Source: Octopus bimaculoides (lineage: Eukaryota). Taken from it: a stretch of DNA of 64,000 nt. The notes below the pieces were generated by a model. It had not been told where the DNA came from, ran no database searches, and was given only the letters and a program-made list of their open reading frames with translations. Below, one piece after another: positions 4,814 to 63,200 of this stretch. Numbering within the stretch: position 1 is the first letter of the stretch; each line of letters opens with the position of its first letter. The stretch spans positions 25,598,399 to 25,662,398 of the forward strand of contig NC_069003.1 of the NCBI RefSeq assembly GCF_001194135.2, in the 5' to 3' direction. A program made the position numbers and the translations under genes.

Positions 4814-5037
4814 CAGTAATCCCTCATCATATTGTGGTTCACCTATCACAGTTTATTATTTAAGCTTATGTCAAATTCCTCTGTGGTGTTGCTTTGCATT
4901 TATAATAAAATAAGTATATACAAATTATAAAAATAATATAAAATAACATACAGTACAGTACTGTTTCTACTTTGCGGATTTTCACCTATCGCAGGGCTTT
5001 TTGGAATGTAACACCCACGATAGTCAAGGGATTACTG
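4814..5037. mobile_element. Tc1/mariner-pogo (Tigger-like) MITE
   Basis: Terminal inverted repeats CAGTAATCCCT / AGGGATTACTG flanked by TA on both sides. Confidence 0.7.
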
Positions 5038-42116: not shown

Positions 42117-42119
42117 ATG
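42117..42119 (+). CDS. RPL7A: RPL7A exon 1 (coding part is the ATG only)
   Basis: ctcatcATG|GTAAGT after a TCT motif; same ATG-only first exon as vertebrate RPL7A. Confidence 0.85.
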
Positions 42120-42546
42120 GTAAGTCATCGTGTCATTTGATTGTATTTTGTAATCGCTAAACATCTATATTTATTTCAACTTTAAATCAAGCATCAAATA
42201 TGTATTTTGTATCTTGTAAGAGTCTACTACATATACGAAGAGATATTTTGTAAAAAATATTGTATATTTTTGTGAATTTAATTGCAAAAAAATTTGGTAA
42301 GCTGTGCTTTTTCTTCATCCATTTTACAATTTCTCTTGTTACTTTTTATTTTAAGGTGGAGTTTAGTAATTATTGGATTAATTTTAATTATTCTAAAAGA
42401 ATTACCATCTCAGAAAAAAAAAAAAAACGTTATTTGTGTGTCCTTATATAATGTGTGGCTGTATATATATATATATATATTAGAATTATGTGTGCACGTG
42501 TATATCCACTCCAGTCCTCAATGCTAATCCCTGTATATTTATGATG

Positions 42547-42577
<31 letters not shown>

Positions 42578-44372
42578 GTGAATGTAAAATATATTTTTAT
42601 AATTCTATACTTTATAATATTTTTGAAGTTGATCAAGGCCTTGACCGAGCGGTCCATTAATTTATTCCTAAAAAATGGAAAGATTTATGTCGGCAAGATT
42701 TGAATTCAAAGCATATAGGGACGTAACTTAAATACGGAAAGTGTTTAAGTAAAAAGACAAAAATTTTTGTAAAATGTAAATCGGCAAAATATATTTATCC
42801 TAAACGCGAGAAATAAACGAATTTGAGTAGAATCAATTGTCAAGTTGCAGGTTCTGATGAGGGCTTCCCTTAGGCATTGTAGAATATCTATATCGAAAAG
42901 AAGGCCTTCCGGCGATCTTACGGTACGAGTCCTAAATATCGGCCTTTTCCGTAAAAAGTGTCTTCGGCGATCTTTACCAAAGATCGGCTCTAAAATATCT
43001 ATATCGAAAAGAAGGCCTTCCCCGATGTCCATCTGTTAAATCTGTGAAGCTTTTTCAAGTGTCAATGGAAACAATTTGCTTGCCCTTTTTTGATAAGCTT
43101 TCTGATAATGTCCTTAAATATATTCACATTAAGTTTCCTGTATACACACGCACACCACACGTGTCCGGTGTTATCCTAACCGCCGAAAACGGGTGGTGTG
43201 CGTATTCTTTATCTTCGCCATCTTAAAGTAACACTTGTTAAGCAGTGGCAGGACAGCCGTGTATATACAACGGGCTTCTACACATTTTCGGAATTCACTT
43301 AGAAGGTATTAATTGGTCCGAGGCTATAGTAGTTGTCCAAGGTGTCGCACATTGGGGCTGTACTCAAAACCACATGGTTTCGAAGCGAAATTTTTAATCA
43401 GTCATACCTGCACCTATATGTGTTTGACGATATAGAGTATATAAACTAGGGCTTCCTTACTCAGTAAAACGTCTGAGCCATTGTATGACTACATGAAATC
43501 ACAATGGGAGAACGTAGTCCTTGAGAACTTTGCCACAACTGGAACGCCATGAAATTTGTTCGATCAGGGCTGATGTTATATCTAACAATTTGTCTATCCT
43601 CTGAAGATTTACGGTACTTCATTATTTGATAGAAGCCAATGTTTTGTGTAGAAGAGTGGCTGGCAGCAAAAATATCCAAACACTTATTCCGCTAATTTTT
43701 TCTCTCTTAGTTCCTGGGAGAAATCAAACATTTTTATTTTTCAATATATGTCCAAGTGTGTGTGTATGGGTTACTTAAGGTCCAGTATTTATATTGTACC
43801 TCAGTTGCGGATTTAAGACAGTCGTCAGATGGATGCTTTTATCCCTCAGGGGTCGATAAAATATAAGGATCAGTCATGTGTTGTGATCTCTAGAGCTGAA
43901 TAGAAGCGTGATAGGATAATTAATTCATTGATATTTTGATTTTATGTCTTGTACAATGATCTAATTAGAAATATACATTCAACGTCCGTTTTCCATGCTG
44001 GCATGGTTTGGACGAAGAGGATTCGAGTGGTAGCTTTTCTACGGCCAAATGCCCCTTATGATGCTCCCTTCCATGTTCCCAAGTAGGAAATTATTATTCT
44101 AATTATAAATTACATTATCATTTGTCATAAAGTTTGCTTCATATTAATTTACATTAGCAAGTGATTGTCTTTCCAAAGTAGTAAACATTCTCAGAAATGG
44201 TTGGAAGTTGCAAAAAATGACATGTCTTGGGTAGAAATGAAGTGCTCCATGTAGCAATGTAGAGGAGAGGGTTAATGTAGTACTGGTAGGGATAGGGAAG
44301 AAGTAAGTGATGAAAATGTTTTTCAGCAATGTACTATACTTGAGATCATTGATTTGTTCTAAACAAACAATT

Positions 44373-44436
44373 GACTATGATGACACTTGTTGGATATGTG
44401 ATTGTCTGTGAAATCGATCCCTTGGCTGTCTGAGTC
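44373..44436 (+). ncRNA. Box C/D snoRNA, SNORD53(U53)-like, copy A (RPL7A intron 1)
   Basis: GACT/AGTC stem, ATGATGA, CTGA; D guide TCCCTTGGCTGT is complementary to LSU ACAGCCAAGGGA, and the +5 rule gives the human Cm3848-equivalent C. Confidence 0.85.
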
Positions 44437-44848
44437 CACCTTATTTCACCTTATGNNNNNNNNNNNNNNNNNNNNNNNNNNNNNNNNNNNNNNNNNNNNN
44501 NNNNNNNNNNNNNNNNNNNNNNNNNNNNNNNNNNNNNNNNNNNNNNNNNNNNNNNNNNNNNNNNNNNNNNNNNNNNNNNNNNNNNNNNNNNNNNNNNNNN
44601 NNNNNNNNNNNNNNNNNNNNNNNNNNNNNNNNNNNNNNNNNNNNNNNNNNNNNNNNNNNNNNNNNNNNNNNNNNNNNNNNNNNNNNNNNNNNNNNNNNNN
44701 NNNNNNNNNNNNNNNNNNNNNNNNNNNNNNNNNNNNNNNNNNNNNNNNNNNNNNNNNNNNNNNNNNNNNNNNNNNNNNNNNNNNNNNNNNNNNNNNNNNN
44801 NNNNNNNNNNNNNNNNNNNNNNNNNNNNNNNNNNNNNNNNNNNNNNNN

Positions 44849-44965
44849 GCCACCGCTACAACAGAAAATAGTATTAATTGGCTTAAGAGACATGGACTTT
44901 TAAATACCCCAAAAATATGCCCCTCGTGTGGAGCTAGCATGATGGAAGTAGCCAAAAAGTTTTTT
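44849..44965 (+). mobile_element. Merlin/ISXO2-like transposase N-terminal fragment
   Basis: SINWLKRHGLLNTPKICPSCGASM, typical WL..GLL....CP.CG..M zinc-ribbon start. Confidence 0.55.
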
Positions 44966-45276
44966 TTTTTCTAATTTGATAAATTCTACGGAAACAAACG
45001 AAGGTGGACGAGTGATAGAGAGATAGACAGACAGATAGATAGATAGCTCCGGCCAGTCAGTAGCCAAAGAAACAGATTTCAACTCAAACCAGCAGTAACA
45101 TTCCTTGTTTAGATTTTTCTACTTTCGCTTCTGACAGCTAATACCATGACAGTGCCGTGCTCCATGTAGCAATGTAGAGGAGAGTACTGGTAGGGATAGG
45201 GAAGAAGTAAGTGATGAAAATGTTTTTCAGCAATGTACAATACTTGAGATCATTGATTTGTTCTAAACAAACAATT

Positions 45277-45340
45277 GACTATGATGACACTTGTTGGATA
45301 TGTGATTGTCTGTGAAATCGATCCCTTGGCTGTCTGAGTC
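45277..45340 (+). ncRNA. SNORD53-like C/D snoRNA, copy B (intron 1)
   Basis: Body identical to copy A; flanks differ (11-nt deletion, substitutions). Confidence 0.8.
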
Positions 45341-46084
45341 CACGTTATCTCACCTTATGATGCCCCCCCCCTCGTGTTCCCAAGTAGGAAATGTTTTCCG
45401 TCCTATCTAGTGAGACAAGCTCTCTAACCACACAACTATATGTGTGTAAAAAATCCGATCCTGCGGAAGGCACCTTTGAGGAGCCTGGCCGTTTCGTGGC
45501 CCTGTACCCTTGTGCAATGAAACTTATTTCTGCAAATGTGCGAAGTCCTGATGCTGATCATAGTTTAATCAATGAGCGTAGGAGCGGGGTAAATGCAGTA
45601 AAAATAAGGTGGGGTGGGGATCAGTGGGACTCCATTTCAGCAACCCTTCAGAAATTGAACGTCATTACGACACTCTCTGGGAGTTCATGGTACGAAATTC
45701 ATTGTCATTGCTTCGATTTGGTTTAAAAAATGCAGTAAAAATAGGGAGTTCAGTGGGGCCCCTGGGATTAGGAGAGTTGCTGGTTTGAGTGTTGTCCTTG
45801 CACCAACGGTCTCGGAGTTAACGGACATAAAAACGTAACTGACAGAAACATCACTCAAATTTAAATTAAGATAGAGGGTAATTCTTCAGGGTTGTGTCCC
45901 TTCATTTTTTTTTTTTACACACTTGTAAACTGAACAATTAACTATATATATATATGAGGGGGTTTAGATTTAGACAAGATTTATTGGTGAAAGCAGTTGT
46001 CAAGCACATCAGGTTTTGAAATACAGAATTTTGTGATTAAATTTTCAATTAGAATTCACATTTCTTCATTTGCATCTCCTGCAG

Positions 46085-46202
46085 CCTAAATTCAAGAAAG
46101 GAAAAAAGAAGTTGCCACCAGTTCCTACTGTTGCTAGGAAGGTGGAACCAAAGAAAGTGGTCAACCCACTGTTTGAGAAAAGACCAAAGAACTTTGGTAT
46201 TG
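46085..46202 (+). CDS. RPL7A: RPL7A exon 2
   Basis: [40 protein letters not shown]; CAG / GTGAGT. Confidence 0.97.
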
Positions 46203-46740
46203 GTGAGTAAATTTAAATTTCTGTCTTCATTTTATAATAAAGTCCAGTGCTAGCATTATTTTATGGAAGAACTTAATGTGTGAACTACAAATTTTATGGT
46301 CATATTTCCATTAACAGGTCAAATTTTGAGGAGTTTCATAGGATTTTATTTTTGGAATATCCAGTGAATAGAACTGGACGGTTCTATTTAGCCAAAGTGT
46401 TTCATCTTTCATTATCCAGTGAGTCCTTTCAATTTGTAAAACTGATTTGAGGAAAATTTAACCACTTCTAATGGATTGAATAATCATTTGAAAACAGCAA
46501 TGATTCTTTCTTCCACTTCTTTCATTTCCCTCATTGTTTTCTATTCAAATATGACATCATAGTAAGATTTTCCAGGAATATTAGATTATAAATACACATA
46601 GCTTAGATTTATTTATACACATTTTGTAATTAATGTTGGCTTATTTATTTCCTTGCCATTATGCAGATCCTTAATTCAGTGTTCAATTTTATTTCTGTGG
46701 TAAAGAAATTGAGAGGTGGGCTCATGACTTCAGAAAATGT

Positions 46741-46812
46741 TCAGGCAATGATGGAATTAAGAATATTTGCTACATGAATATTAATGATTACAAATGTTTT
46801 TGCTGAGCCTGA
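46741..46812 (+). ncRNA. C/D snoRNA, U24/SNORD24-like carrying only the D' guide (intron 2)
   Basis: TCAGGC/GCCTGA stem, C ATGATGG, guide GAATATTTGCTAC plus D' ATGA, C' ATGATTA, D CTGA; the guide matches human U24 AAGAATATTTGCTAT and pairs 13 bp with LSU GUAGCAAAUAUUC. Confidence 0.88.
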
Positions 46813-47729
46813 CCAAACTTCAAACTTTTCCTGGTTACAACGGTTTACAGTGCCCTGTTGACTGAAGTAACCTGTGGTCTTAATAGAGAAGTATTAATAA
46901 AAACAAGATTATTTTACAAACAAAATTAAATAAAAAAATTACTGGTTTTTAAAGATTATTTTAAACTGACCTCCAGTTTGTAGCAGATGAGATGTGGAAA
47001 TAAAAATAAGTTTGAAAGGCTTTTTTAAAGTTTTCTCTATTTGAGAATAATTTAAAGAAAATAAAAGGTGTACACATAACCTGAATAGTTAAATAGGTTT
47101 TTGCAAGTATGGTTTTGAGTTTCATGTTACTGTGGACCTGTTTTAACTGAGCTTCAGATTGATCAATCNNNNNNNNNNNNNNNNNNNNNNNNNNNNNNNN
47201 NNNNNNNNNNNNNNNNNNNNNNNNNNNNNNNNNNNNNNNNNNNNNNNNNNNNNNNNNNNNNNNNNNNNNNNNNNNNNNNNNNNNNNNNNNNNNNNNNNNN
47301 NNNNNNNNNNNNNNNNNNNNNNNNNNNNNNNNNNNNNNNNNNNNNNNNNNNNNNNNNNNNNNNNNNNNNNNNNNNNNNNNNNNNNNNNNNNNNNNNNNNN
47401 NNNNNNNNNNNNNNNNNNNNNNNNNNNNNNNNNNNNNNNNNNNNNNNNNNNNNNNNNNNNNNNNNNNNNNNNNNNNTTTATATTGCTCGAAGAGAGAAAA
47501 TATTTTAAAACATGCAGTTGATGATGCCTGTAAAGCCAATTGGTGGAAGTAACACATGTTTCACCCCTATTAAATATCCTGTGTGATATATATATATATA
47601 TATATATATATGAACATAGTGATACTGTAGCAGGATATTAATTCATTTCATAAGTAAATGGTTCATGAAAATGTAAAATGTCTATAAATTTTAAGTTATA
47701 GAAATTAAATTATGACTGGTTAACTCACT

Positions 47730-47915
47730 CTACTGATCGCCAAAAGGTTCCTGATTGCTCCAGTAATTTCTAATCTTGGGTAACTGTCTAATACCTATAA
47801 TAATATTTATGGCAAAAAATGCCCGTATTTCTACGGTTGTAGGAAACCACAAGCTATCTTTTTTCCAGCTTGTTTTCATTCTGCGTAACTTTGTTTCCGC
47901 AGTGATCACTTCAAA
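47730..47915 (-). mobile_element. piggyBac transposase fragment
   Basis: WFPTTVEIRAFFAINIIIGIRQLPKIRNYWS resembles the piggyBac W.PTT..EI.AF.G..I.MGI..LP.I.DYWS motif. Confidence 0.75.
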
Positions 47916-48038
47916 CAAGCATGTAGCAATGTAGAGGAGAGGGTTAATGTAGTACTGATAGGGAAGAAGTAAGTGATGAAAATGTATTTCAGCATTGTAC
48001 AATACTTGAGATCATTGATTTGTTCTAAACAAACGATT

Positions 48039-48102
48039 GACTATGATGACACTTGTTGGATATGTGATTGTCTGTGAAATCGATCCCTTGGCTGTCTGAG
48101 TC
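48039..48102 (+). ncRNA. SNORD53-like C/D snoRNA, copy C (intron 2)
   Basis: Body identical to copies A and B. Confidence 0.85.
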
Positions 48103-48672
48103 CACCTTATCTCACTTCATCCCTGTGTTGATAGTGAGGGTTAGGGTCCTGTTGACTGTCTTAATCACAATTTGATAATTGTTTTGCTACCCATAGTGGC
48201 TAGCTAGTTAGCAATTTGTGCTGCACTGGGTAAATGACTGGTATAGCTCTAGCGATACTGTTGACATGTGTATAGCCTGTTATTTTTATAGACTAGTATT
48301 GGGAACTTTAGCTTTTAAGAACAAATCTTGAAATAATACTGAAAATAGTAAGCTCTAGCATTTTTGTTGTCTTTCTTTCATAGGAAGAGTGCTCTACATA
48401 TGGACTATCATTTTCTACACCAGTGGTCACTTCAATTTGTCTGTGTATGTATATATGCACATACACACATCTATGTTCACTTAGTAGTAACAGTAGGCTT
48501 GATTGTATAAAATAACGATTAAAATAATTTGCCATTTGAGTCTGTTCTGTATAAGTTGAATTGTATAAAATGCTTATGATTTATTTTGTAACTGATATTT
48601 TCTGAGAAATGTAAGAAGGAAATATTTAGTTAATCTAAAGGATCACAATAATTACAAGGCATATAATTTCTC

Positions 48673-48738
48673 AGCTATGAGGTTTACCTTGCCCTCTCTG
48701 ATATTGATGAGACATTTTTTTATACGCATTTCTGAGCT
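48673..48738 (+). ncRNA. C/D snoRNA, SNORD103/SNORD85 (snR40)-like, copy 1 (intron 2)
   Basis: AGC/GCT stem, variant C ATGAGGT, D' CTGA preceded by CTTGCCCTCT (pairs with SSU GGAGGGCAAG, Gm601 equivalent), C' TTGATGA, D CTGA. Confidence 0.75.
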
Positions 48739-49398
48739 TTGAAAGAATATGCTTTTGTATTTATGTGACCCCCAATTTTATTGTCGAAGCGTTGTTACAT
48801 ATTTAATAGATGGGGATGTTGAAATATTAGATATTCATATCACTATGAATATCTAATAAATATATACATGTATTTATATATTATACACACACATTACAGA
48901 GGGATAAGAATTGGACTATTATAGGAATAAAATTACTCTTGAAAGTGTATGTAGCTGATAGGTTTAGATGTCTTTTCTGACACTGACTGAATGGCAATAG
49001 TTCATAGCCTTGCTTCAGGGATCTGATGTTTGAAGAGGTTTAAACTGGTTACGTTTTGGTAGTTGTTTTCTATCCCTAAACAATATTTAGGGTTTAGATA
49101 ATTACAAGGACTGACACTTAAACAATTGGGAAATAGATGAAAAGCTTGGTGAGTGAGCATGGCTGGAAAGTGGGTACTAGGATAGGAGTATGTCATGTAG
49201 AAGATGCTAATATTGGTCAAAGGCAGATGAGATAAACCTGAAATGCTAAACCTTGATTAAATATGGAATACAATGGGTGAGTAGGACTCATCAACGCTAA
49301 GAACTTGTTTTGTTAGACCTCATCAGCCTAAAGTGACATGTTTACTAGAGAAGCCTATCTGTTGGACTAAGATGACAATTTCATTTAATTTTGTAGAT

Positions 49399-49527
49399 TG
49401 GAAGAGAGCTGCACACTTGTATCCCATGATACATTTGTACGATATCTCTTCCTACATTAACTATGACAGTTGTAGGACACCGGTCATTATTTTGTGTATG
49501 AACTGGTGATAAATACCTGTTACATTC
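49399..49527 (+). ncRNA. Box H/ACA snoRNA, copy 1 (intron 2), target unassigned
   Basis: Hairpin GGAAGAGA/TCTCTTCC, H box ACATTA (49454), hairpin GACAG/CTGTT with CACCGGT/ACTGGTG, ACA at 49522, 14 nt from the pocket. Confidence 0.8.
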
Positions 49528-49735
49528 GTGTTAGATATTCAGCTTTAATATAACATTTGGCATGACCTGTCCCATTAGGAAGAGACCAAGAGAATATATC
49601 TGGAATGATTTGTCTACCATTCCAATATCTGAAACAAAGATGAACCCTTTAGTATTTAGATCAGCCATATCTAGCCCAAATATTCTACCTGTTTTATGTT
49701 CAAACCAGCTAGATCTCACCTCACACCTTCTCTTT

Positions 49736-49776
49736 CTGACATTGATGAGACATTTTTTTATATGCATTTCTGAGCT
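49736..49776 (+). pseudogene. 5'-truncated SNORD103-like copy (D', C' and D only)
   Basis: CTGAcaTTGATGAgacattttttt..atatgcatttCTGAgct matches the full copies; box C and the D' guide are replaced by a piggyBac-MITE fragment. Confidence 0.65.
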
Positions 49777-50324
49777 TCTAATGAATATCTCTCTGTAAAT
49801 TCTTATTCTTAGTTAAGGCTTATGTAACTAAAATGCCCACCCCCATGTAGCTGTAGTTAACTCAAATACACTTCCCATGTGTAAATTCTGAAAAGTAGAG
49901 ACTTTTGACTGAATGGGCATAATTTCATATATGGAAATGGTGCTTCTATTATGAAATTCAAGATGTATTGGTTTTATTAGTGTTCAATCTGTAGATTGAA
50001 CACTAATATATCTGAGGTGTGTATATAGCTCATTGTATATCTGTATTTGTCTCTTTGACATTGTGTGATAGTTGCCACCATACTAGATGTCATTTCCAAT
50101 ATTTCATGAGCATATCTGGCCATGGAGAAATATTACCTTGCTTGAAATCAGGAAGGGCATTCAGCCATAGGACAGTAAACTCTGCTTGACCCATGCAAGT
50201 ATGAAAAAGTGGACGTTAAAATGTGTGGAATTTTTTGTATTTATGAAGGACCTGAACGTGATTGTGTAATATGTTCAGAAATTTGTGTTTATTTTTTTAA
50301 GACAAACCCTGTCAGTTTGTTTAT

Positions 50325-50456
50325 TGGAAAAGAGCTGCACACTTGTACCCTATGGTACATTTGTACGATATCTCTTCCTATATTAACTGTGACAGTTGTA
50401 GGACACTGGCCATTATTATCTTGTGTATGAACTGGTGATAAATGTCTGTCACATTA
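50325..50456 (+). ncRNA. Box H/ACA snoRNA, copy 2 (intron 2)
   Basis: Paralog of 49399-49527; H box ATATTA, ACA at 50451; compensatory change GTATC/GATAC to GTACC/GGTAC. Confidence 0.8.
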
Positions 50457-51241
50457 TTTTGTGTTAGATCAATGGATATTCAAAGAATTTATTAGAATTT
50501 TTAGGTACATTTTGGACCTACCATTTTGGTATTAACACTTTAATATATTTTGGTACTGAAGATAGGGTTTTGCTTAAGTTGATGACGGCTGGTGAAGTAA
50601 TAATAATGAAACCTGATTAGGAAAATTTAGTGGTTAATGGATTTCATTTTCTTGTCAAAGTAAGTAAGCATAGAGGATTGTGATTTTAAATTTTGGTATT
50701 GGTACTGTGAACAAAACAATTGATGTAAAGAGAGCTAAAAGATAAATCATTTAGAAACTACTATTAGGAGATGAATAACTGTGCTGTTTCAATTACAGAA
50801 AGATAAGGTTTTATGAAACTAGTCTTAGTTGAGGAACTCGGTTTCAGCCTGTCAATGGTATATTTAAAGTATTTTATTGACTATAGTCTACTATTGTTAT
50901 ACGAAGGGAGATAACTATAGTTTAACCATATTTTTAAATAATTTCTCTTGCTTTCTGTAATTTTGTTTCTCATCCCTCTGTTATATGCTTATTTCTCCGT
51001 TGGGTGCCAAATGGATGGCTTCAAAATGACTGCACCAAATCGTCCATTTGTTATTTCATTGTACCTTGTGATATAATGGAATCGTTTGAAATATCAGACT
51101 GGAGTAATTTGTTTTCCTTTGCAACATTTATGAATCTGACATAATGGTTTACTGTTTTTTAGATATTAAAATTGTAACGTTTTCCATGATATTCTACACA
51201 AATAATACTTTAGATGGCTTTTGCGAAGCATATAATTTCTC

Positions 51242-51306
51242 AGCTATGAGGTTTACCTTGCCCTCTCTGACATTGATGAGACATTTTTTATACGCATTTC
51301 TGAGCT
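51242..51306 (+). ncRNA. SNORD103/85-like C/D snoRNA, copy 2 (intron 2)
   Basis: Near-identical to 48673-48738 with the same boxes and guide. Confidence 0.75.
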
Positions 51307-51455
51307 TTGAAAGAATATGCTTTTGTAGTTTCTTTGTGGAGCTTAATTAGAATTAGATCTTTTGTTTCAATATATTATAACTAGAATACATTTTAAACAT
51401 AAATGTTCCTTTCATAAATTTATAGAATTTCAAATCTAATAGCTAAGTTATTTAA

Positions 51456-51674
51456 CCCTTTAGAATTTAAACCGGCCATATCCGGCCAAAAGTATTCTGC
51501 CTGTTTTGTTCAAACTGGCCAGATCTGGTCCCTCACACCAACCCTACAATATTGTTTTAAAAATTAACAGCTACCTCATCAAAATTCATAGCTACAAGGT
51601 AATGTATGATTAGTTCAAAACAATGTGGATAAAAAAAGCATTAATTTTGGAAGAATAATGCAAACACTAAAGGG
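51456..51674. mobile_element. piggyBac-type MITE (abundant family)
   Basis: TTAA|CCCTTTAG ... CTAAAGGG|TTAA; related copies near 24403-25054, 33906-34225, 36546-36775 and 61978-62185. Confidence 0.8.
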
Positions 51675-51807
51675 TTAAATTTTGTGATATCATCTAACAT
51701 GATAATATACTGAATATTGAGAAAGAAAGGAGTGGGTGTATGTGGTGAAAGCAGTATACTAGATTTTTAGTTACTATTTCAAGGTTTCTGTGATTTCCGT
51801 ATAAATT

Positions 51808-51873
51808 AACTGTGATGACAATCGTTATTGGTATTGAATTTTCTGTGAAATATACCCCTTGGCTGTCTGAGTT
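51808..51873 (+). ncRNA. SNORD53-like C/D snoRNA, divergent copy D (intron 2)
   Basis: AACT/AGTT stem (compensated relative to GACT/AGTC), GTGATGA, guide CCCTTGGCTGT plus CTGA; 5' half diverged. Confidence 0.85.
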
Positions 51874-51906
51874 ACTTGAAAATATGGCAGAACAAATATT
51901 AGTGAA

Positions 51907-52115
51907 AAAGCAATTGTTTACTGTCAACGTAATGTGACAGACCCATTAAGGGAGTCATACTGCTGCTATTTAGCCCTAGGAAGCTAGACCGCTTCCTGTT
52001 GGCCTTGACACATTTCCTGTGTCCTTATATTTGTGAAGCTTCCTAGGGCTAAATAGCAGCAGCATGATTCCCTTATTGGGACTGTCACATTAAGTTGACA
52101 ATAAACAACTGCTTT
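51907..52115. repeat. Foldback / MITE-like inverted repeat, 79-bp arms, 51-nt loop
   Basis: 51907-51985 is the near-perfect reverse complement of 52037-52115. Confidence 0.9.
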
Positions 52116-52706
52116 ATCGTAACACTGCTGCTTATGTCTCTCTGTGAGATTTATAGTTAGATCATTTCTAAATATTAGTGAAAATCATATGAACTGAATT
52201 AGGTCTGTATATGTATTTTTTATATAGTAATAAGGTTTGACTTGCAGCTGGAAATTTTAAGGTTCTCTTGTTTGAAGAATATAAATTATAGAAATATTAA
52301 CTCGCAAGTAGCTTCCAGTAATTTCTCAAACGGAATCTTGCTATCTTTGTTGTAAAATGCTGCATTTTATTAATTAGGGCACTAGTTCAATAATAGTCGA
52401 TTATGTAGTTGCTTTGATATGATTTGTTATGTTAGTTTTGGGTTATCTTCTGCTTTTTTCTATACAAGTTCACTATGAAGTTATTGTTTTTTGTATAACT
52501 TATCCTCACTGTATTTGAACCTTTGCATTGTATGGTTTGTGCTGAGGCCAAGCAACAGTGGAATATGAATACCAGTTCTGAAACCTTGGCATCCTCACTG
52601 ATAGGGTTGTTGATTTGGAAACTGTTCACATGATTATTCTCTTGTTTATAAAAATACCTGATTACAAATTAAACGTGGCTAAATTTCATTGTGTATTTTT
52701 CTTCAG

Positions 52707-52856
52707 GTCAAGATATCCAACCCAAGAGGGATCTAACACGTTTTGTAAAATGGCCCCGTTACGTGAAGATCCAAAGGCAAAGGGCTGTTCTTTATAAACG
52801 CCTCAAAGTTCCACCACCAATCAATCAGTTTAGGCAGAATCTTAGCAAAGATTTAG
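52707..52856 (+). CDS. RPL7A: RPL7A exon 3 (150 bp)
   Basis: [41 protein letters not shown]. Confidence 0.98.
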
Positions 52857-53675
52857 GTAAGTCCAGTTTTATTTTGATTTGAGAAGATATACTTGCTATG
52901 TTGAGGTTGAGGAAAATTTATGAAAATATATATAAGCAACTCTTGATTATGTAATAGGTATTTTGGTATACTTTTGATGACTTGACAAAATCGAAACACT
53001 TCAATTCGGCTGCTTCCGTGGAAGCACATGTCAACTGTTAGTTGACGAAATGGGAGAAGGAGAAGAAAGCTAATCAGTTGTACGTGTGTGCTTGTTCTTG
53101 TCTGCCTGTTCTGTTATGTATTTATGTGTTGTGGAATATAGATAACGTAATTATGCCAGCAATGTCTCATTTTAAACTTGAAGGGAAAAAATCATTACAT
53201 ATTTGTTCTTACCTGCTTCACGCCAAGCAGAAATATTGCAACATGCATGGAGAAAAGGAGGGACTATACAATGCATTTTATGAATTTCATAAAAAAACAT
53301 TCTTGAAGTTTAAATTATACAGTATAAAGCTGCCTTCGCTATATCTATAGTGTTTTGATTTTATCGAGTTATATCAAAAGAATACCGGTATTTTTCGAAA
53401 AGGAATAAAAAAATTGTCCTGACTAGAGAGGGGTCGAAATAGCTATTACTTGGTACCTGTCCCCATGCTGCCACTGAGTACTCTTATACTACTGTAACTG
53501 ACTGACCATACCGTGGTATATAACTTACAGCTAATGCAGTACCAAGCTTGATCAAGGTAAACTGTGCCCCCAGTTTACTTTTCATAAAGAAATTATTAGG
53601 ATTGTGCAAGTGTATAAAAAAAGTAGTCTACATTGATAATCATGTACAAGTGTATTTACCATAGAATGTTTATAG

Positions 53676-53939
53676 CAGTGTTTCTTAACCTTTTGACCTT
53701 TAAAATAGTGTGTGTGTATATATATATATATAATGTTGTCCATAAATTGCAGACATCACTAAATATATCCTCAATGGTTATATTTTTTGATAACATAATA
53801 GGTTAGATAGGATGATGTCTATATTACAATAGCCAATAATATGTTGTGCATGTATAGTAATATTACAATCATGAAATTAGTATTAGCTTATCTCACTCTT
53901 TCTCATGGAACCTTGGGAAACCCTGGTTGAGAAACGCTG
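53676..53939. mobile_element. hAT MITE in RPL7A intron 3
   Basis: TIRs CAGTGTTTCTTAACC / GGTTGAGAAACGCTG; perfect 8-bp TSD gtttatag. Confidence 0.85.
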
Positions 53940-54061
53940 GTTTATAGGTTCGTATTTGTCGGTAAATCTATAAGTCCTGTAATTGAATCCACCCAGAATG
54001 TAATTAGGTTGGATTTTAGTGCAATTACTTTAATGTATTGTTTTTTTGTTCCAAATTGCAG

Positions 54062-54282
54062 CAACTCAGATGTTTAAACTTCTGGACAAATATCGTCCAG
54101 AAACCAAGCATCAGAAAAGAGCACGTTTAAGGGCTCGTGCCGAGAAACGAGCTGCAGGTAAAACAGATACACCAACAAAACGCCCCCCTGTTGTTAGGTC
54201 TGGAGCCAATACTGTGACCAGCCTTATAGAACAGAAAGCAGCCCAATTAGTTGTCATTGCTCATGATGTTGATCCCATTGAG
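54062..54282 (+). CDS. RPL7A: RPL7A exon 4 (221 bp)
   Basis: [16 protein letters not shown]...[14 protein letters not shown]; CAG / GTAGGT. Confidence 0.98.
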
Positions 54283-54893
54283 GTAGGTGTTTCCCCTAAC
54301 TGCATTAGGTTTATCTATATGTGCGTATGTTCCTTATGCATTCCAAAGCAAAAGATTCAGTAAGCTTTTGGCTACCAACTAAACTATTTTCATACAAAAA
54401 ATTAAGATTATCATTTTTCTTTTAGTCACCTATCATAAATGACATCTTTTACCACCACAATGATGTCACATTTTCTATATGTGTTCGTGTGTTTGTTGCG
54501 TACATTAGGCTGATGACTGACAAGTATATGTGTGTAATGGTGTTTGTGTCTGTCTGTATACATACATTTTTTTGATGACTGACACAGGTAGACGCACACA
54601 CGGAAAGATATGTGCTGATACTGAAAGTTATGAGTAAGTTTCATTAGAAAGTGAAAATAGCTTCACTCTTTCAATTTCAACCAAAATTACAGTATTCAAT
54701 TACAAGACCAATGTGTGAATAATGAAAGTAATGTTTCTCCGAATTAGTCACATATCTGTATTATAATAAAGTTGCTTAGGTGATCTCTCATTTTGATTTG
54801 CAGAGCTGTCATGTGTGTTAATTAGCTTAACTGTTATAACTCTCCAGCATACAAGTGTTTAACTATAGGATGAGATAAGTGATGTTAAGACTT

Positions 54894-54969
54894 GGATAAT
54901 GATGAAGTAAACATGTCAGATCCCTGCATGGTGATAATACAATCACTACCAACCGAGATCTCTGAGTCC
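54894..54969 (+). ncRNA. C/D snoRNA, U24-like carrying only the D guide, copy 1 (intron 4)
   Basis: GGAT/GTCC stem, ATGATGA, D guide ACTACCAACCGAGATCT plus CTGA pairs with LSU AGAUCUUGGUGGUAGU (Cm2338 / yeast Cm1437 equivalent). Confidence 0.8.
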
Positions 54970-55306
54970 AGTTTTAACTGTTGTGAATGATATGAGCGAT
55001 TATCTTTCTTGAGCTTTGTTATAGCAACTTAACTAGATATTAAAAAAAATTTAATGCATAACTCTTTTTGGTACCAACTTACCTGAGATAGTCTCTATAT
55101 AAATTTTCTGTTTAAAATTGAACTAAATTAAAATCTTTTATATGTGTTTGTGTGTTTGTTGCATACATTAGGCTGATGACTGACAAGTATATGTGTAATG
55201 GTGTTTGTGCCTGTCTGTATACGTACATTTTTTTGATGACTGACACAGACAGACTTACACAGGGAAAGATAGGCTTGAGGTGTGTGTTAATGGTATGTCT
55301 GTTATA

Positions 55307-55350
<44 letters not shown>

Positions 55351-55546
55351 NNNNNNNNNNNNNNNNNNNNNNNNNNNNNNNNNNNNNNNNNNNNNNNNNN
55401 NNNNNNNNNNNNNNNNNNNTAAAGTTGCTTAGGTGATCTTTCATTTTGATTTGCAGAGCTGTCATGTGTGTTAATTACCTTAACTGTTATAGCTCTCCAC
55501 CATACAAGTGTTTAACTATAGGATGAGATAAGTGATGTTAAGACTT

Positions 55547-55622
55547 GGATAATGATGAAGTAAACATGTCAGATCCCTGCATGGTGATAATACAATCACT
55601 ACCAACCGAGATCTCTGAGTCC
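55547..55622 (+). ncRNA. U24-D-guide snoRNA copy 2 (intron 4)
   Basis: Body identical to copy 1; lies across an N-gap from it, so could be a haplotype or assembly duplicate. Confidence 0.65.
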
Positions 55623-56512
55623 AGTTTTAACTGTTGTGAATGATATGAGCGATTATCTTTCTTGAGCTTTGTTATAGTAAACTTACTAGATATTTAAAAA
55701 AATTTGTTAATGCATAACTCTTTTTGGTACCAACTTACCAAAGAGATAGTCTCTATATAAAGTAATGTTTCTCCGAATTAGTCACATCTGTATTATAATA
55801 AAGTTGCTTAGGTGATCTTTCATTTTGATTTGCAGAGCTGTCATGTGTGTTAATTACCTTAACATTTTTTTATTTATTTACTTCTGTTTTAAAGTGCAAG
55901 TGAGGAGAAAATGAAAGATGTATGTATGTGTTAATGAAATGGACGTGTGTGAGAAAGAGAGTAAGAGTGACTGAAGGGGTGTGTTATGTATATGTACATA
56001 TATCAGTACATATGCATACATATTTTTCGTATGTGTGTGAGAGTGAGTGAGTGAGTGAACATATGTTGTTTAAGTGGCACATGAAAGCACGTAGGTGATG
56101 GGTGGGTGAGATGGAGGAAGGAGCATTGAGTGTTTCTTTAACAAAAATTAAACTAAAAAATATGTATCTCTCAGATTTGTAATCTCTATTTTTTCTACAT
56201 AGATAAAAAAGAAATTCGAAAAGTTATTAAAACATTGCAGTGAGGATGGGGGAGAATAAAAATGCTGAAAACGTGATTTCTGGACAAAATCAAAATCGTA
56301 CTAACCCCCTTTTATACGATGAAACAATACATAGTTTGTAATTCTTTTTTTAAGTACAGAAAGTACTTTTATGCAAACCCATGCAAATTGTACCCTCCCC
56401 TTCACTTTTAAACAAACAATAACTTCTATTATGCCATTAACTAATTATCAGCTGTGCCAATTTTGCCCATAAGAAAGGAACAAATAATACAATGTGTCTG
56501 TAGGTTATAACA

Positions 56513-56539
56513 CCTGGCAACGCCGGGATGCATTGCTAG
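56513..56539 (+). mobile_element. Helitron-like 3' terminus
   Basis: GC hairpin CCTGGC-AAC-GCCGGG followed by CTAG|T; ends an insertion (from about 55863) that interrupts the snoRNA repeat array. Confidence 0.5.
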
Positions 56540-56695
56540 TCTATATAAATGTAATACATGGTGTATTTATCTATAAGCAGTGTTTAAATTTTTATGGTAG
56601 TCATTATAAAAATATTTAACTGTAACTGCTAACACAACTGTTATAGCTCTCCAGCATACAAGTGTTTAACTATAGGATAAGTGATGTTAAGACTT

Positions 56696-56771
56696 GGATA
56701 ATGATGAAGTAAACCTGTCAGATCCCTGCATGGTGATAATACAATCACTACCAACCGAGATCTCTGAGTCC
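56696..56771 (+). ncRNA. U24-D-guide snoRNA copy 3 (intron 4)
   Basis: One substitution relative to copy 1 (aaacctgtc). Confidence 0.75.
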
Positions 56772-57154
56772 AGTTTTAACTGTTGTGAATGATATGAGCG
56801 ATTATCTTTCTTGAGCTTTGTTATAGTAACTTACTAGATATTTAAAAAATTTATTGTTAATGCATAACTCTTTTTGGTACCAACTTACCTGAGATAGTCT
56901 AAATAAATTTTCTGTTTAAAAGTGATCTAAATTAAAATCTTTTAAATGTTAATTTATATTCCAAACATTAAGCTTAATTCATGAGTTATTTCACTAAATT
57001 TGTCGTTATTTTCTCAATGAAATATTTCACGAGTGGAAAGCACTAACATGATGGAGAGCATGATTTTTAATTAGCTGATGATAGCAATGATGAAATATAT
57101 TGGATTAGATTCAAACATTTTCAATTCTACTTTGCACTCATTTTCTTTTATATT

Positions 57155-57189
<35 letters not shown>

Positions 57190-57927
57190 NNNNNNNNNNN
57201 NNNNNNNNNNNNNNNNNNNNNNNNNNNNNNNNNNNNNNNNNNNNNNNNNNNNNNNNNNNNNNNNNNNNNNATATATATGAGAGAGAGCAAGAGGGGTGGG
57301 GTATTTTAATTATTTGAATAAACCTATTATAAATATTTCAATTACTCCTGTATATAAACCTACATACAACATTGTTTGAATTACTCTTGTATGTACTCCA
57401 GTACAGTTTATTGTTACCATATTTTCTATATATGGTTAGTGTTGAGTTATTTCCCTTCTAGCCAGTTTGAATTTGCTCTTATCCGAACCCATAGCTTGAA
57501 ATTTTGCAAACAAAGCAAAGGATGCTTGATCCCTTAGAAAAAGTGACCAAGTCCCCCCTTCGTTATATCTATCTCAGGTAATCTCCGGTTGTTTCAGATG
57601 AAAATTGTCGAAGTGTAGTACAACAGTTTAATATTTTTCAAAAATATAGCAAGTCCCACATAAGACAGTTTTGCAAAAATACTTCTGGCTGAAAATATCA
57701 TGCATAGAGTTACGATTTTATGCATCCAACAAAGTATATATGAAAGCTGAAAGTGTTGCCAATGTAAAAAGAAATGGAACGGTGAAACTATTTTTTTCGC
57801 TTTCTGAAAATGCAAGACTTTTGCATAATTATGATATACACAAACACACACTAATAGTAACAAATGATAAAGTATTTACTTCATTGTAACAGCAGTAAAG
57901 GAGTTTGAAGCTATGTTGTAAGCAAAT

Positions 57928-58002
57928 TGGACAATGATGATGACAATTTATCAGTTACATCTCCATGGTGATATTTTATTTACTACCGAGATCTCGAGTC
58001 CA
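57928..58002 (+). ncRNA. U24-D-guide snoRNA, divergent copy 4 with defective box D
   Basis: TGGAC/GTCCA stem, ATGATGA, contiguous 14-nt guide TACTACCGAGATCT, but box D reads CGA (1-nt deletion). Confidence 0.65.
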
Positions 58003-58727
58003 GTTGTTTGTAATGATTTTTTTTACCTTTTGGCCTATTCATTTAGGTTCATTTGAATAGTTTTGTGTGTTTTGTTAAAATTAAGGTTTTATTTTGTAAA
58101 ATGTCGAATGAATAATGGAGAAATAAAGCAAGAACTTGATGACTTATACAAGATATGGTGGAGGTGGGGAATTCAGTGTGAGTGAGATAATTTGTGTTTC
58201 ATATACATCATCATTGTTTAACGTTTGCCTTCCATGCTAGTGTGGGTGGGACTATATATATTTGTACACACACTTGGTTATAATTTTTCTTTGTCTCCAT
58301 TAGCATACTTTGTCAACTCTGTACATACCATTATTATTATCACTTCATTTTCTTTACTATTTTTATGTTAACTATTGTTAATGTCACCTTTAAAACACAT
58401 TCAGATTTGAATGGTTTTACACACACACACACACACCTACTCTACAGATGGTTGAATCAGTGACTTGTTTATTCCATGGAGGTCAATGAGTATCTTAAAG
58501 GAATGTCACAACACCAGATCCTCTTTCTTTACACTGTCACAAGAACAAAGACTGTTAGATAGAAACAATTTCTCAGATACTGAAATCGTTGTTGGCCATT
58601 TCTTTTGAAATAGTATTTTTTGTGCATTGCTGATTGTGTCTGTTGAGGAAGTGGTTAGATAAAACAATAGTTTGAATAATTCTGGTTTAAATTCACAACA
58701 TACTTTGGCTTCATTTTTACTCAATTG

Positions 58728-58799
58728 GATCACAGTGATGCTTGAATTTCTTCAACTGAATTTTTTAAATTTGAAGACACTGACGACTTCTGAGTGATC
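58728..58799 (+). ncRNA. C/D snoRNA, SNORD36(U36)/snR47-like (intron 4)
   Basis: GATCAC/GTGATC stem, C GTGATGC, D' guide TTGAATTTCTTCA(A) plus CTGA matches human U36C GAATTTCTTCACCTGAAT and pairs with LSU UGAAGAAAUUCAA (Am3703 equivalent), D CTGA. Confidence 0.88.
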
Positions 58800-58919
58800 A
58801 TTTCTAATTGTATCCCCTGCTTTCCTTGTGACTTAATTCGAAATCAGATCTTGTCCTTTTAATATCTGTACAAGACTTCTTATTATTTAATATTAAAAAG
58901 TTTTCAACCAACTTTTCAG

Positions 58920-59050
58920 CTTGTGCTCTTTATGCCTGCACTGTGTCGTAAAACTGATGTCCCCTATTGCATTGTAAAAGGAAAGGCTCGTCTTGGCAGA
59001 GTTGTCAACACAAAGACCTGTTCATGTCTCGCCATCACCGATGTCTACCC
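58920..59050 (+). CDS. RPL7A: RPL7A exon 5 (131 bp)
   Basis: [43 protein letters not shown]; CAG / GTGAGT. Confidence 0.98.
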
Positions 59051-60226: not shown

Positions 60227-60296
60227 GGAAGACAAGTCAAATTTGAATAATTTAATCACAGCCATCAGGACAGACTTCAACGACAGGTTTGAAGAG
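60227..60296 (+). CDS. RPL7A: RPL7A exon 6 (70 bp); final exon not visible
   Basis: EDKSNLNNLITAIRTDFNDRFEE resembles human [23 protein letters not shown]; CAG / GTCAGT. Confidence 0.95.
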
Positions 60297-63200
60297 GTCA
60301 GTTATTTGTTATTGCTCTTGTTTTTTTTTGTTTTGTTTTTTCAAATTTTTTTGCATATACATAGGATGTTAACTACTTATGCATGACAAAATTGACCAAA
60401 TGTAAGAAAGAGGCACCCAACATAATGCCAGTTTGTTGCAGGGGAGAGCAACGTGAAATGAAATGTTTTGCTCAAGAACACAAGTTTGTCAACCAGTGGT
60501 TGGGGACAGACGGACACATGCACATGTATATGTGCACACGCACACACAGCCTTCTTTCAGTTTCTGCCCATCGAAACCACTCAACTTGGTTGGCCTGTGG
60601 CTGTAGAAGATACCTGACCCAAGGTGCCATGCAATGAGACTAAACTTGGATCCATGTGCTTGGGAAGCAAACATCTTAGCACACAATGATACCTGTGTGT
60701 GTGTGTATGCACATATATATATGTATATATATATATATATATATAAAACTTACACAAATGACAAGGTATAAACTTCACTATATACTTAAACTACTTGCCT
60801 ATGTAATATGATTTGTAAAGGCTTTGTGTGTAATTTTACAACCTGACAATTAATGAAAGAATCAGTTATGATCTTGAATATTTATTTAAGCAGATTTTGT
60901 GACTCAGTTACTTTTTAATTATGCACTTAATCTTTTACGAAGTGGCCATTGTTTTCAGCAATACTATTTCATATTAATTATATTGTGATTTAGTTCGACA
61001 TTATGTTGTTAGATTTAGAAGGTTTTGTTTACTAATTCCATTGCATGTGNNNNNNNNNNNNNNNNNNNNNNNNNNNNNNNNNNNNNNNNNNNNNNNNNNN
61101 NNNNNNNNNNNNNNNNNNNNNNNNNNNNNNNNNNNNNNNNNNNNNNNNNNNNNNNNNNNNNNNNNNNNNNNNNNNNNNNNNNNATACTAAAGAAAAGAAT
61201 TGTCGTTTTGTTATTCTTTGTCAGAGTTGTGGACAAATGTTCATGTGTGATAAGGGCACATGTGCGGGAGAAATTCCATGGTGATAAGGCCAAGATCCCA
61301 CATGGTAGCTCTACCTGCCACCAACTGTTTTAACATGAATCTCCTTAATACAGTCTTTGGTTTAAAGATACAAAACAAGGTTTTAATTAAAAGCCTTCCT
61401 ATCATCAACATCATCGTTTAACGTCTGTTTTCCATGCTGGCATGGGTTGGGCGGTTTGACTGGGGATTGGCAAGCCAAGAGGCCTCATCAGCTCAAATCT
61501 GATATGGCAATGTTTCTACAGCTGGATGCCCTTCCTAATACCAACCACTCTGAGGGTGTAGTGGGTGTTTTTTATGGGAGCCAGTCAGGTGGCACTGGCA
61601 ACGACCCAACATAAATGGTACTTATTGTGTTCCACAAAAAAGATATACTGCTACACGTTGGAAAGAAAGGTTGCTTCCACTTGAGTTGGTATCTGATATT
61701 GTCATTTAACTCTTGGAATTGGAGGGAAATGAGATTAAAGTATTATTGTATGATGCCAACATCAGTAATTATGAAGTTGAATGTATGTTATGTAAATTTA
61801 GATAATATGGTTGATGTATAGAGGCAGTATTAATGCAGAGGTTATATCCCCCACTTGAATGTGGGTGTACTGTTAGAACAAGCTATACTGAAGTAGAAAC
61901 CTTTGCACCAAAATCCAGTATGAGTTTCTCTTTTGGTGTCTATTGCAGTATAATTTGTTCAAACAGAACATTCATGTTTAACGCTAGCGTTTAAACTGGC
62001 CATATCCAGCCAAAATAAGATTTTATCTTCAAGATAGCAAGATCTGGCCTCACAACATATGTATTCTGAAAATAAGCAATCACATCATTGAAATCTCAAA
62101 AACTTCAAGGTAATGCTTGGCTAATTTTTATCAATGTGAATAATTAAGCATTACATTTGACAAATCTGAATGCTAATGGGTTAGGTGGTGGTGGGGGATA
62201 AATAGTAAATAAAATGGATCAAATTGGGGGTAGAATTTTTTTTTTTTTGCTTGATGATTCTATATAAACTGATTTTGGTTGTGACTAGTTGTCATTGTTC
62301 CATCTGTAATTATGCATGCACAAAGTGCCAGTTCTCAATAGTGGTTGTGTTAATGTGAGATATTCATGTTTACATAAATGGTGGGGAGGGTGATGGCAAG
62401 TTGTAATACTGTTTTTTCCTTTTGCTAAAATTAGCCCCTCTAACTGCCACAATAGATTAAAACATTTAATCCAGTGACATTAACACTGTCAGGTCAGACA
62501 TTAATCCTACTGCTAATGCATTATTAAATCACACTACCACTAAAGCAAATCTCCTCACACTGCTCCTAGATTTGTAATACAGATGAAGCCAAAAGATGAT
62601 CTCTTTAAGACTTTAACTCCTCCTCCTCTCTTACCTTGAGGGTGATGATGGTGGTGGTGGTGTATCAGTTTATCAATTCACTTGGTTCTTATGCAAGGTC
62701 TTCGTTGCATTGAAGAAATCTTACCTGGAAGTGGTTCTCTTAATATTTCTGTCCTGGAACTTCAATAATCTCAGCAGTGAAACATCAGGTAATTGTTCAT
62801 TTACATACATGTTAATGTGATGAGAATTTAAATGCACATGTGTATTATACACAATCATTTAATGTCCACTTTTCCAGGCTTCTATGGATCAGATTATATA
62901 TACACATATCGTGTGTATGTATATATATATATAATATTGGGGACAAAATCCAAAATTACAGGTAAAAACTCAATTAAAATCAATTTATAAAAAATTAAAA
63001 TTAAATTGAGCTTTACAGAGTAAAATATATATAAATAAATATAGTTTTAGGGAAAAGAACCAAGGTTCATGAACTCGTCGATGAAAATCCACTGTCACAG
63101 AAAAATTAATAATTAAAAGCACAATAAATGAGTGTAATATACAAAGTAAATATAAGAAAGATATTTACTAACGAATCTAAACTAACTTTTCCTTTCAAGG

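Follow-up and report, generated by a model that had tools for sequence, protein, structure and literature searches.

The introns of the ribosomal protein L7a gene (RPL7A; protein eL8) of Octopus bimaculoides, contained in a window of 64,000 nucleotides (nt; contig NC_069003.1, positions 25,598,399 to 25,662,398, forward strand), encode small nucleolar RNAs (snoRNAs) of the box C/D class that each possess one of the two guides of U24. Comparative analysis suggests that these genes are probably two kinds of descendants of the ancient two-guide U24 (SNORD24; yeast snR24), situated in its usual host gene and produced by complementary guide loss: a gene in intron 2 (46741-46812) retains the D' guide alone and has an unrelated segment next to its D box, whereas a family of genes in intron 4 retains the D guide alone and has an unrelated D' segment. 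An initial annotation of the window had described exactly this split, and it is confirmed by box anatomy, by alignment to covariance models and by the RPL7A loci of three other cephalopods. The course of events proposed there, duplication followed by complementary loss of guides, is supported by outgroups with multiple two-guide copies and by the difference between kept guides (96-100% identical) and vacated slots (47-51% identical); such a loss, after duplication within the gene and before the coleoid radiation, is well supported.

Anatomy of the half-guide genes

The D'-only gene possesses the C box, D box and terminal stem expected of a box C/D snoRNA, as well as internal D' (ATGA) and C' (ATGATT) boxes (Table 1). 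Its terminal stem CAGGC/GCCTG is common to chiton U24; its C box lacks the final A of the consensus, as do the C boxes of outgroup U24 genes; and its guide AAGAATATTTGCTAC is the D' guide of U24, the core of which (AATATTTGCTA) is invariant across 10 sequences. The string GAATATTTGCTAC, with one mismatch at most, would be expected by chance 0.12 times per window, and is found once, exactly. The vacated slot CAAATGTTTTTG is complementary to the D' guide of the same gene, with a predicted helix of 12 base pairs (bp) and z = -2.3 (positions 46759-46802). This helix is kept in Octopus sinensis, partly kept in Sepia and absent from Argonauta, and is unexplained; it may be due to chance, the guide core AAUAUU being palindromic.

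The D-only genes comprise three intact copies (type I) and one divergent copy (type II). The type I genes have a C box (ATGATGA), a C' box (GTGATA), the guide CTACCAACCGAGATCT, a D box (CTGA) and a terminal stem (TGGA/TCCA plus a wobble pair); by chance, ACCGAGATCTCTGA would be expected 0.01 times per window, and it is found three times. The internal boxes of the D-only genes, D' (CAGA or CTGC) and C' (GTGATA), are present, the former in degenerate form; degenerate internal boxes are common among box C/D snoRNAs. The initial description of the intron-4 family, a D guide followed by CTGA, applies to the three type I copies and needs correction for the type II copy, in which the D box was altered to TCGA through a 1-nt deletion relative to the O. 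sinensis orthologue (L010:21117-21191), which has CTGA. The type II copy is likely to be a pseudogene or a variant. The three D-only genes of Sepia (L009:9890-9966, 10134-10210 and 10790-10867) likewise read TCGA where CTGA would be expected; either cephalopods tolerate UCGA as a D box, or the TCGA copies are inactive.

The D-only copies are flanked by assembly gaps, and copies 1 and 2 are identical inside the snoRNA, as might be expected if the multiplicity of D-only genes were an artefact of assembly. This explanation is extremely improbable, because the flanks of the repeat units show 93-96% identity, a difference of 4-7%, and because four D-only copies are also present in the gap-free assembly of O. 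sinensis and another four in Argonauta hians. Amplification is therefore real, but it is not confined to one half of U24, as had been assumed: O. sinensis possesses two D'-only genes, both halves vary in copy number, and even the two Octopus species differ in copy number and intron position. Since the gap between two of the type I repeat units (gap 2) may hide further repeat sequence, the D-only copy numbers in O. bimaculoides are minima.

Homology to U24

The Rfam model of SNORD24 (RF00069) recognizes the D'-only gene at 28.8 bits (46743-46810) and D-only genes at 24.2 bits (54894-54969 and 55547-55622), scores that do not reach the gathering threshold of 41 bits, as expected from half genes. 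Nine two-guide lophotrochozoan U24 genes served to build a custom covariance model (R1), which detects the five octopus genes at 40, 34.3, 34.3, 31.7 and 30.3 bits (E = 1.5e-9 to 1.1e-6), and no further match to R1 was found in 42000-64000 with filters off. By way of calibration, the genes from which R1 was built score 72-89 bits and three Pinctada genes outside the model score 63-77 bits, which places the two-guide genes of outgroups at 63-89 bits; the outgroup genes listed by Rfam score 41-59 bits, above the Rfam threshold. In the D'-only gene (40 bits, E = 1.5e-9), the 5' part is aligned and the 22-position D-guide block of R1 is replaced by 11 unrelated nt. In the D-only genes (34.3 bits for type I copy 1), the aligned portion is the 3' block alone, consisting of C' box, D guide and D box (CUACCA.CCaAGAUCUCUGA), and the D' guide is unmatched. 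In the window and in the loci of O. sinensis, Argonauta and Sepia, R1 finds half genes alone, at 18-43 bits, and no two-guide U24 (R1 above 45 bits, or Rfam SNORD24 at threshold) was found in the window or in the four cephalopod RPL7A loci, the RPL7A loci rather than whole genomes having been searched. A fragment at 61276-61298 (GGTGATAAGGCCAAGATCC), on the downstream side of where the last coding exon belongs (at a distance of about 140 nt in O. sinensis), was considered as a relic of the 3' half of U24 and rejected as a chance resemblance with no C or D box and no model match.

The low Rfam score of the D-only family, and a terminal stem (TGGA/TCCA) unlike those of outgroup U24 genes, would also fit an origin from an unrelated snoRNA that converged on the D target of U24. 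Convergence is very improbable, however, given that the host gene is identical, that the full 3' block (C' box GGTGATA, spacer, CTACCA(A)CC, AGATCT, CTGA) is colinear with that of outgroup U24, and that intermediates, in which the D' guide has decayed, occur in Haliotis, Lineus, the chiton and Mercenaria. By descent and by location (introns 2 and 4 of RPL7A), the octopus genes resemble U24, and they depart from it in having one guide per RNA; accordingly, we file them as derived single-guide U24 descendants rather than as standard members of SNORD24. Annotation by the Rfam threshold overlooks such half genes.

Other cephalopods and the direction of change

The RPL7A loci of eleven other species were fetched via their L7a proteins. 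The D'-only kind occurs twice in O. sinensis (L010:6159 and 7477) and once each in A. hians (L001:7161) and Sepia pharaonis (L009:8060). The D-only kind occurs four times in O. sinensis (L010:15992, 18509, 19683 and 21117), four times in A. hians (L001:13514, 15043, 15700 and 16349) and three times in S. pharaonis (L009:9890, 10134 and 10790). In all four cephalopods examined, the U24 genes of RPL7A are thus of the D'-only and D-only kinds and nothing else. The presence of the same two kinds in octopus, argonaut and cuttlefish implies that the partition is older than the divergence of octopuses and cuttlefishes, which took place about 250 million years ago or more. A Logan contig (L097) considered as a second decapodiform locus proved to be spliced mRNA that holds no snoRNA, and no Nautilus RPL7A was found in the protein collection searched.

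Outside the cephalopods, a two-guide U24 is intact in RPL7A introns of six lophotrochozoans. The chiton Liolophura has one such gene plus a second, D-only copy with a decayed D' guide; the abalone Haliotis has two U24 genes, the second with a partly decayed D' guide; Solemya has five two-guide genes plus two short D'-only copies; the pearl oyster Pinctada has three two-guide genes; Lingula has two; and the nemertean Lineus has two plus one with a truncated D' guide. Mercenaria has D-only copies alone in RPL7A, and a search of the Biomphalaria RPL7A locus found no U24. The survey of molluscs for two-guide versus split U24 thus finds the former in chiton, abalone, Solemya and pearl oyster, and the latter in cephalopods. 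The outgroups, often with two to seven copies spread over different introns, thus document the ancestral state as well as the duplicates that a partition requires. The intron that harbours U24 is 2, 3 or 5 in the outgroups, and that of the D'-only gene is 3 in Sepia and 1 and 2 in O. sinensis, so that the suggestion that the O. bimaculoides D'-only gene occupies the orthologous intron is weak. Likewise, two of the O. sinensis D-only genes are in intron 3, and all O. bimaculoides copies are in intron 4.

These distributions are consistent with a scenario in which the ancestral lophotrochozoan RPL7A already contained several two-guide U24 copies; in the lineage of the coleoid ancestor, one copy would have lost its D guide and another its D' guide, and the two-guide copy would have disappeared from RPL7A; since that split, copy number and intron position would have kept shifting. 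The same outgroups offer some support for a different view, that the half-guide genes are redundant, decaying paralogues and that the task falls to an intact two-guide U24 at another place in cephalopod genomes: Solemya, Haliotis, Lineus and the chiton have half-guide copies as well as intact ones, the absence of U24 from Biomphalaria RPL7A means that other molluscan hosts must exist, and one O. bimaculoides copy has a broken D box. We consider redundancy unlikely, in that boxes, terminal stems and exactly one guide per gene are kept in Octopus, Argonauta and Sepia while the remainder of the RNA and the introns diverge, and in that an intact copy is absent from all four cephalopod RPL7A loci.

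Conservation of guides and vacated slots

The core of the D guide (ACCGAGATCT) is 100% identical in all 15 cephalopod D-only copies, and the D' guide is 96% identical among representatives of the cephalopod lineages. Among the same representatives, identity is 47% in the D' slot vacated by the D-only genes and 51% in the D slot vacated by the D'-only genes. Judging by this pattern of substitution, purifying selection is shown to act on one guide per gene. The vacated slots are of suitable length and position to have gained new targets in ribosomal RNA (rRNA), small nuclear RNA or mRNA, in which case the genes would not be plain single guides, and the Octopus D-adjacent slot of the D'-only gene is non-randomly complementary to a sequence, albeit that of its own guide. 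Such a gain is improbable: the slots are about 50% identical between cephalopod lineages, and even paralogues of one species differ at the two target-setting positions, the fourth and fifth ahead of the vestigial box, so that a second conserved target is disfavoured.

Predicted targets in 28S rRNA

The target sequence was read from 86 environmental contigs (Joint Genome Institute, JGI, metagenome), not from cephalopods; the guides of the outgroups point to the same sequence. In eukaryotic 28S rRNA the two target strings adjoin, AGATCT(T/C)GGTGGTAGTAGCAAATATTC, with the two target cytidines 14 nt apart; the joint stretch assumed for both duplexes is AGAUCU(U/C)GGUGGUAGUAGCAAAUAUUC, within AGAUCUNGGUGGUAGUAGCAAAUAUUC. 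The D' guide is complementary to …GUAGCAAAUAUUC…, a 13-bp pairing with conserved eukaryotic sequence, and the core of the D guide forms a duplex of 10 bp, ACCGAGAUCU with AGAUCU(U/C)GGU, in which position 7 is G·U or G-C (according to conserved eukaryotic 28S, not that of octopus). By the fifth-position rule, the D guide is predicted to address the C of AGAUC and the D' guide the C of GUAGC, which we take to be the equivalents of human C2338 and C2352, respectively. This assignment agrees with that of chicken U24, in which the 3' guide addresses 28S C2112 and the 5' guide C2126 (PMC2653536), and is consistent with the sites of yeast U24, Cm1437, Am1449 and Gm1450 (PMC8053091).

Upstream of the D-guide core, CUACC could pair with GGUAG over a bulge of one base in octopods and two bases in Sepia. 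A scan of JGI metagenome contigs for AGATCTCGGT followed by 0-3 extra bases and GGTAGTAGCAAATATTC returned the 86 contigs, which derive from diverse unidentified eukaryotes and are all without extra bases. The C variant of the target therefore exists in nature, and an inserted target for the full 16-nt octopus guide is unsupported; on cephalopods the scan is silent. A full-text literature search for the variant 28S sequence found no paper. In the chiton, the D guides of both U24 genes (L002:7264-7343 and 4738-4816) are CCAAAATCT, with A rather than G at the fifth position before the D box, which faces the C predicted to be methylated; either chiton 28S differs opposite that A, or the site may be unmodified.

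According to the established box C/D rule, each snoRNA would be released from the spliced RPL7A intron and, on its C/D and C'/D' boxes, would assemble with Snu13, Nop56, Nop58 and fibrillarin; the single remaining guide would then pair with 28S rRNA and direct 2'-O-methylation to the nucleotide paired with the fifth position before the box. These steps are inferred from the rule, by which the D'-only gene is predicted to bring about methylation of the C of GUAGC, and the D-only genes that of the C of AGAUC, 14 nt upstream.

Several observations weigh against the derivation of two functional single-guide genes from U24. The functions of U24 may be located outside RPL7A, as shown by Biomphalaria (no U24) and Mercenaria (D-only copies), and an intact cephalopod U24 can therefore be envisaged elsewhere. 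Some boxes are off consensus (D' ATGA and C ATGATGG in Octopus; D TCGA in the three Sepia copies and one O. bimaculoides copy), and the Rfam SNORD24 scores are under the family threshold. The presence of several snoRNAs per intron is unusual for animals and might limit processing. Guide position 7 is G in all 15 cephalopod D-only genes and A or U in other lophotrochozoans, and the target base opposite is U in standard 28S, giving G·U, and C in many uncultured eukaryotes; a U-to-C change in cephalopod 28S that matches G7 is possible.

Host gene, assembly gaps and coordinates

The host gene was identified as RPL7A by tblastn with the human protein and by inspection of splice sites. All exon borders are GT-AG and the joined reading frame is kept throughout, and therefore the intron numbering stands; the translated exons are identical over their full length to public O. 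bimaculoides L7a models. The last coding exon (…IRRHWGGGILG…AQKLG) is not in the sequence of the window, its position coinciding with an assembly gap at 61050-61183: in the gap-free O. sinensis locus, the last exon (L010:25811-25921) maps between window positions 61049 and 61184. As this exon is inside the gap, the public O. bimaculoides models run on into intron 6 (…FEEVSYLLLLLFFF…). None of the three gaps within introns 2 and 4 touches an exon or a snoRNA gene, and the O. sinensis locus is colinear over all three; a search with the U24 model found no U24-like gene in the O. sinensis stretches that match gaps 1 and 3. In the chiton, the abalone, Lingula, Lineus and Sepia, the neighbour upstream of RPL7A is MED22, in divergent orientation, a linkage that we take to be the same as that in the human Surfeit locus.

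Table 1. Coordinates in the window of RPL7A exons, U24-derived snoRNA genes with their elements, and assembly gaps
Feature	Position	Strand	Basis or remarks
RPL7A exon 1	ends with ATG 42117-42119	+	tblastn, GT-AG borders
RPL7A exon 2	46085-46202	+	tblastn, GT-AG borders
RPL7A exon 3	52707-52856	+	tblastn, GT-AG borders
RPL7A exon 4	54062-54282	+	tblastn, GT-AG borders
RPL7A exon 5 (end of intron 4)	58920-59050	+	tblastn, GT-AG borders
RPL7A exon 6	60227-60296	+	tblastn, GT-AG borders
Putative U24-derived box C/D snoRNA gene, D' guide alone	46741-46812	+	RPL7A intron 2; terminal stem TCAGGC/GCCTGA, 6 bp
D'-only gene, C box ATGATGG	46748-46754	+	box inspection
D'-only gene, D' guide AAGAATATTTGCTAC	46759-46773	+	U24 D' guide
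D'-only gene, D' box ATGA	46774-46777	+	CTGA in Argonauta and outgroups
D'-only gene, C' box ATGATT	46784-46789	+	box inspection
D'-only gene, former D-guide slot CAAATGTTTTTG	46791-46802	+	degenerate, non-U24
D'-only gene, D box CTGA	46803-46806	+	
D-only gene, type I copy 1	54892-54971	+	C box 54899-54905, C' box 54931-54936, guide CTACCAACCGAGATCT 54946-54961, D box 54962-54965
D-only gene, type I copy 2	55545-55624	+	guide 55599-55614, D box 55615-55618
D-only gene, type I copy 3	56694-56773	+	guide 56748-56763, D box 56764-56767
D-only gene, type II copy	57927-58003	+	guide CTACCGAGATC 57983-57993; TCGA (57994-57997) instead of CTGA
Assembly gap 1	47169-47476		intron 2; exon or U24-like gene not expected there
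Assembly gap 2	55351-55419		intron 4, between two type I repeat units, beside (TA)n run; may conceal more repeat
Assembly gap 3	57190-57270		intron 4; O. sinensis counterpart about 20 bp

Other snoRNA genes in RPL7A

The window contains four SNORD53/92-like box C/D genes (44372-44437, 45276-45341, 48038-48103 and 51807-51874), three of them near-identical and one divergent, with the D guide CCCTTGGCTGT followed by CTGA; they score 34-39.5 bits (Rfam threshold 46), and related genes are located in RPL7A of Sepia (L009:6784) and Biomphalaria (L004:6017). A box C/D gene weakly similar to SNORD103 is present as two complete copies and one truncated copy (48670-48741, 51239-51309 and 49725-49790), with the guides CCTTGCCCTCT and ATACGCATTT, each followed by CTGA, and occurs also in Argonauta (L001:11496-11569). 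An H/ACA-like gene that resembles SNORA50 (52504-52633; 42.5 bits, E = 1e-4, threshold 90) lies 73 nt upstream of exon 3. SnoRNA genes thus crowd introns 1, 2 and 4 of RPL7A (window 42120-58919), at least six of them being in intron 2 and five in intron 4, which is unlike vertebrate host genes with their usual single snoRNA per intron. Candidate routes for the release of such crowded snoRNAs are endonuclease cuts and hidden mini-exons. Matches to mir-297, mir-466 and similar Rfam families (60689-60770) have the best E-values of the region, and were rejected as artefacts on (TG)n/(TA)n simple repeats.

Comparison with known systems and significance

U24 possesses both guides in RPL7A of the six non-cephalopod lophotrochozoans examined, and presumably in human, where we assume that one RNA directs both methylations. 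It likewise carries both guides in yeast (PMC8053091) and chicken (PMC2653536). All sites guided by yeast U24 depend on the helicase Dbp3, which the authors attribute to the overlap of the rRNA sequences that pair with the two guides (PMC8053091). There is a slender chance that two neighbouring 28S methylations, both directed by one RNA in yeast and chicken, have become uncoupled in coleoids, or that guide G7 tracks a U-to-C change in 28S. If the two sites were uncoupled, separate genes and dosage (1-2 versus 3-4 copies) would let them be set independently, for example by partial or tissue-specific methylation. Complementary guide loss among the copies of a single host gene can here be followed cleanly and dated, the ancestral state having survived in sister groups and the derived state being common to octopus, argonaut and cuttlefish. 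The case also offers a modest experiment by nature on the need for coupling between adjacent rRNA methylations; it leaves the knowledge of how snoRNAs work unchanged. Our literature search found no paper on cephalopod snoRNAs, and a Drosophila methylation map does not mention U24 or RpL7A under those names.

Like SNORD24/U24 of human (RPL7A intron 2) and chicken, the octopus genes are box C/D snoRNAs in introns of RPL7A, and yeast snR24 is also intron-encoded; they share with this family the same two neighbouring predicted sites in large-subunit rRNA, a C box without its final A, and colinear 5' and 3' blocks. They differ in that each has one of the two guides, in the extra A (CTACCAACC) and the G at position 7 of the D guide, and in the presence of several copies per gene and several snoRNAs per intron. 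The two-guide U24 genes of other lophotrochozoans are similar in host gene, guides and multiplicity, and some of their paralogues have one decayed guide, but at least one intact copy is left in each of the six outgroups, in contrast to none in cephalopod RPL7A.

Splits of two-guide snoRNAs have precedents in other families. Human U32A/B and U69 have two guides, whereas in chicken these functions are on separate single-guide snoRNAs (PMC2653536), and one of the scenarios put forward for a cluster of fungal snoRNAs is the split of a two-guide snoRNA (PMC5824354). These cases concern other families and taxa; in octopus, both halves are in the ancestral host and outgroups show the direction of change. 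Within RPL7A itself, SNORD36 (U36), a separate family with separate targets, is partitioned in Haliotis, Biomphalaria and Mercenaria between copies of the D'-only kind (AATTTCTTCAC) and copies of the D-only kind (CGAGCTTTTTAA); chiton RPL7A possesses two-guide copies of SNORD36, that of Sepia both half kinds, and that of octopods the D'-only kind alone (window 58730-58798). Since split snoRNAs are known from other families, and since half-guide paralogues of U24 and SNORD36 are common in other molluscs, the novelty is modest, and the cephalopod split of U24 is a fresh, well-documented instance of a known process rather than a new kind of thing.

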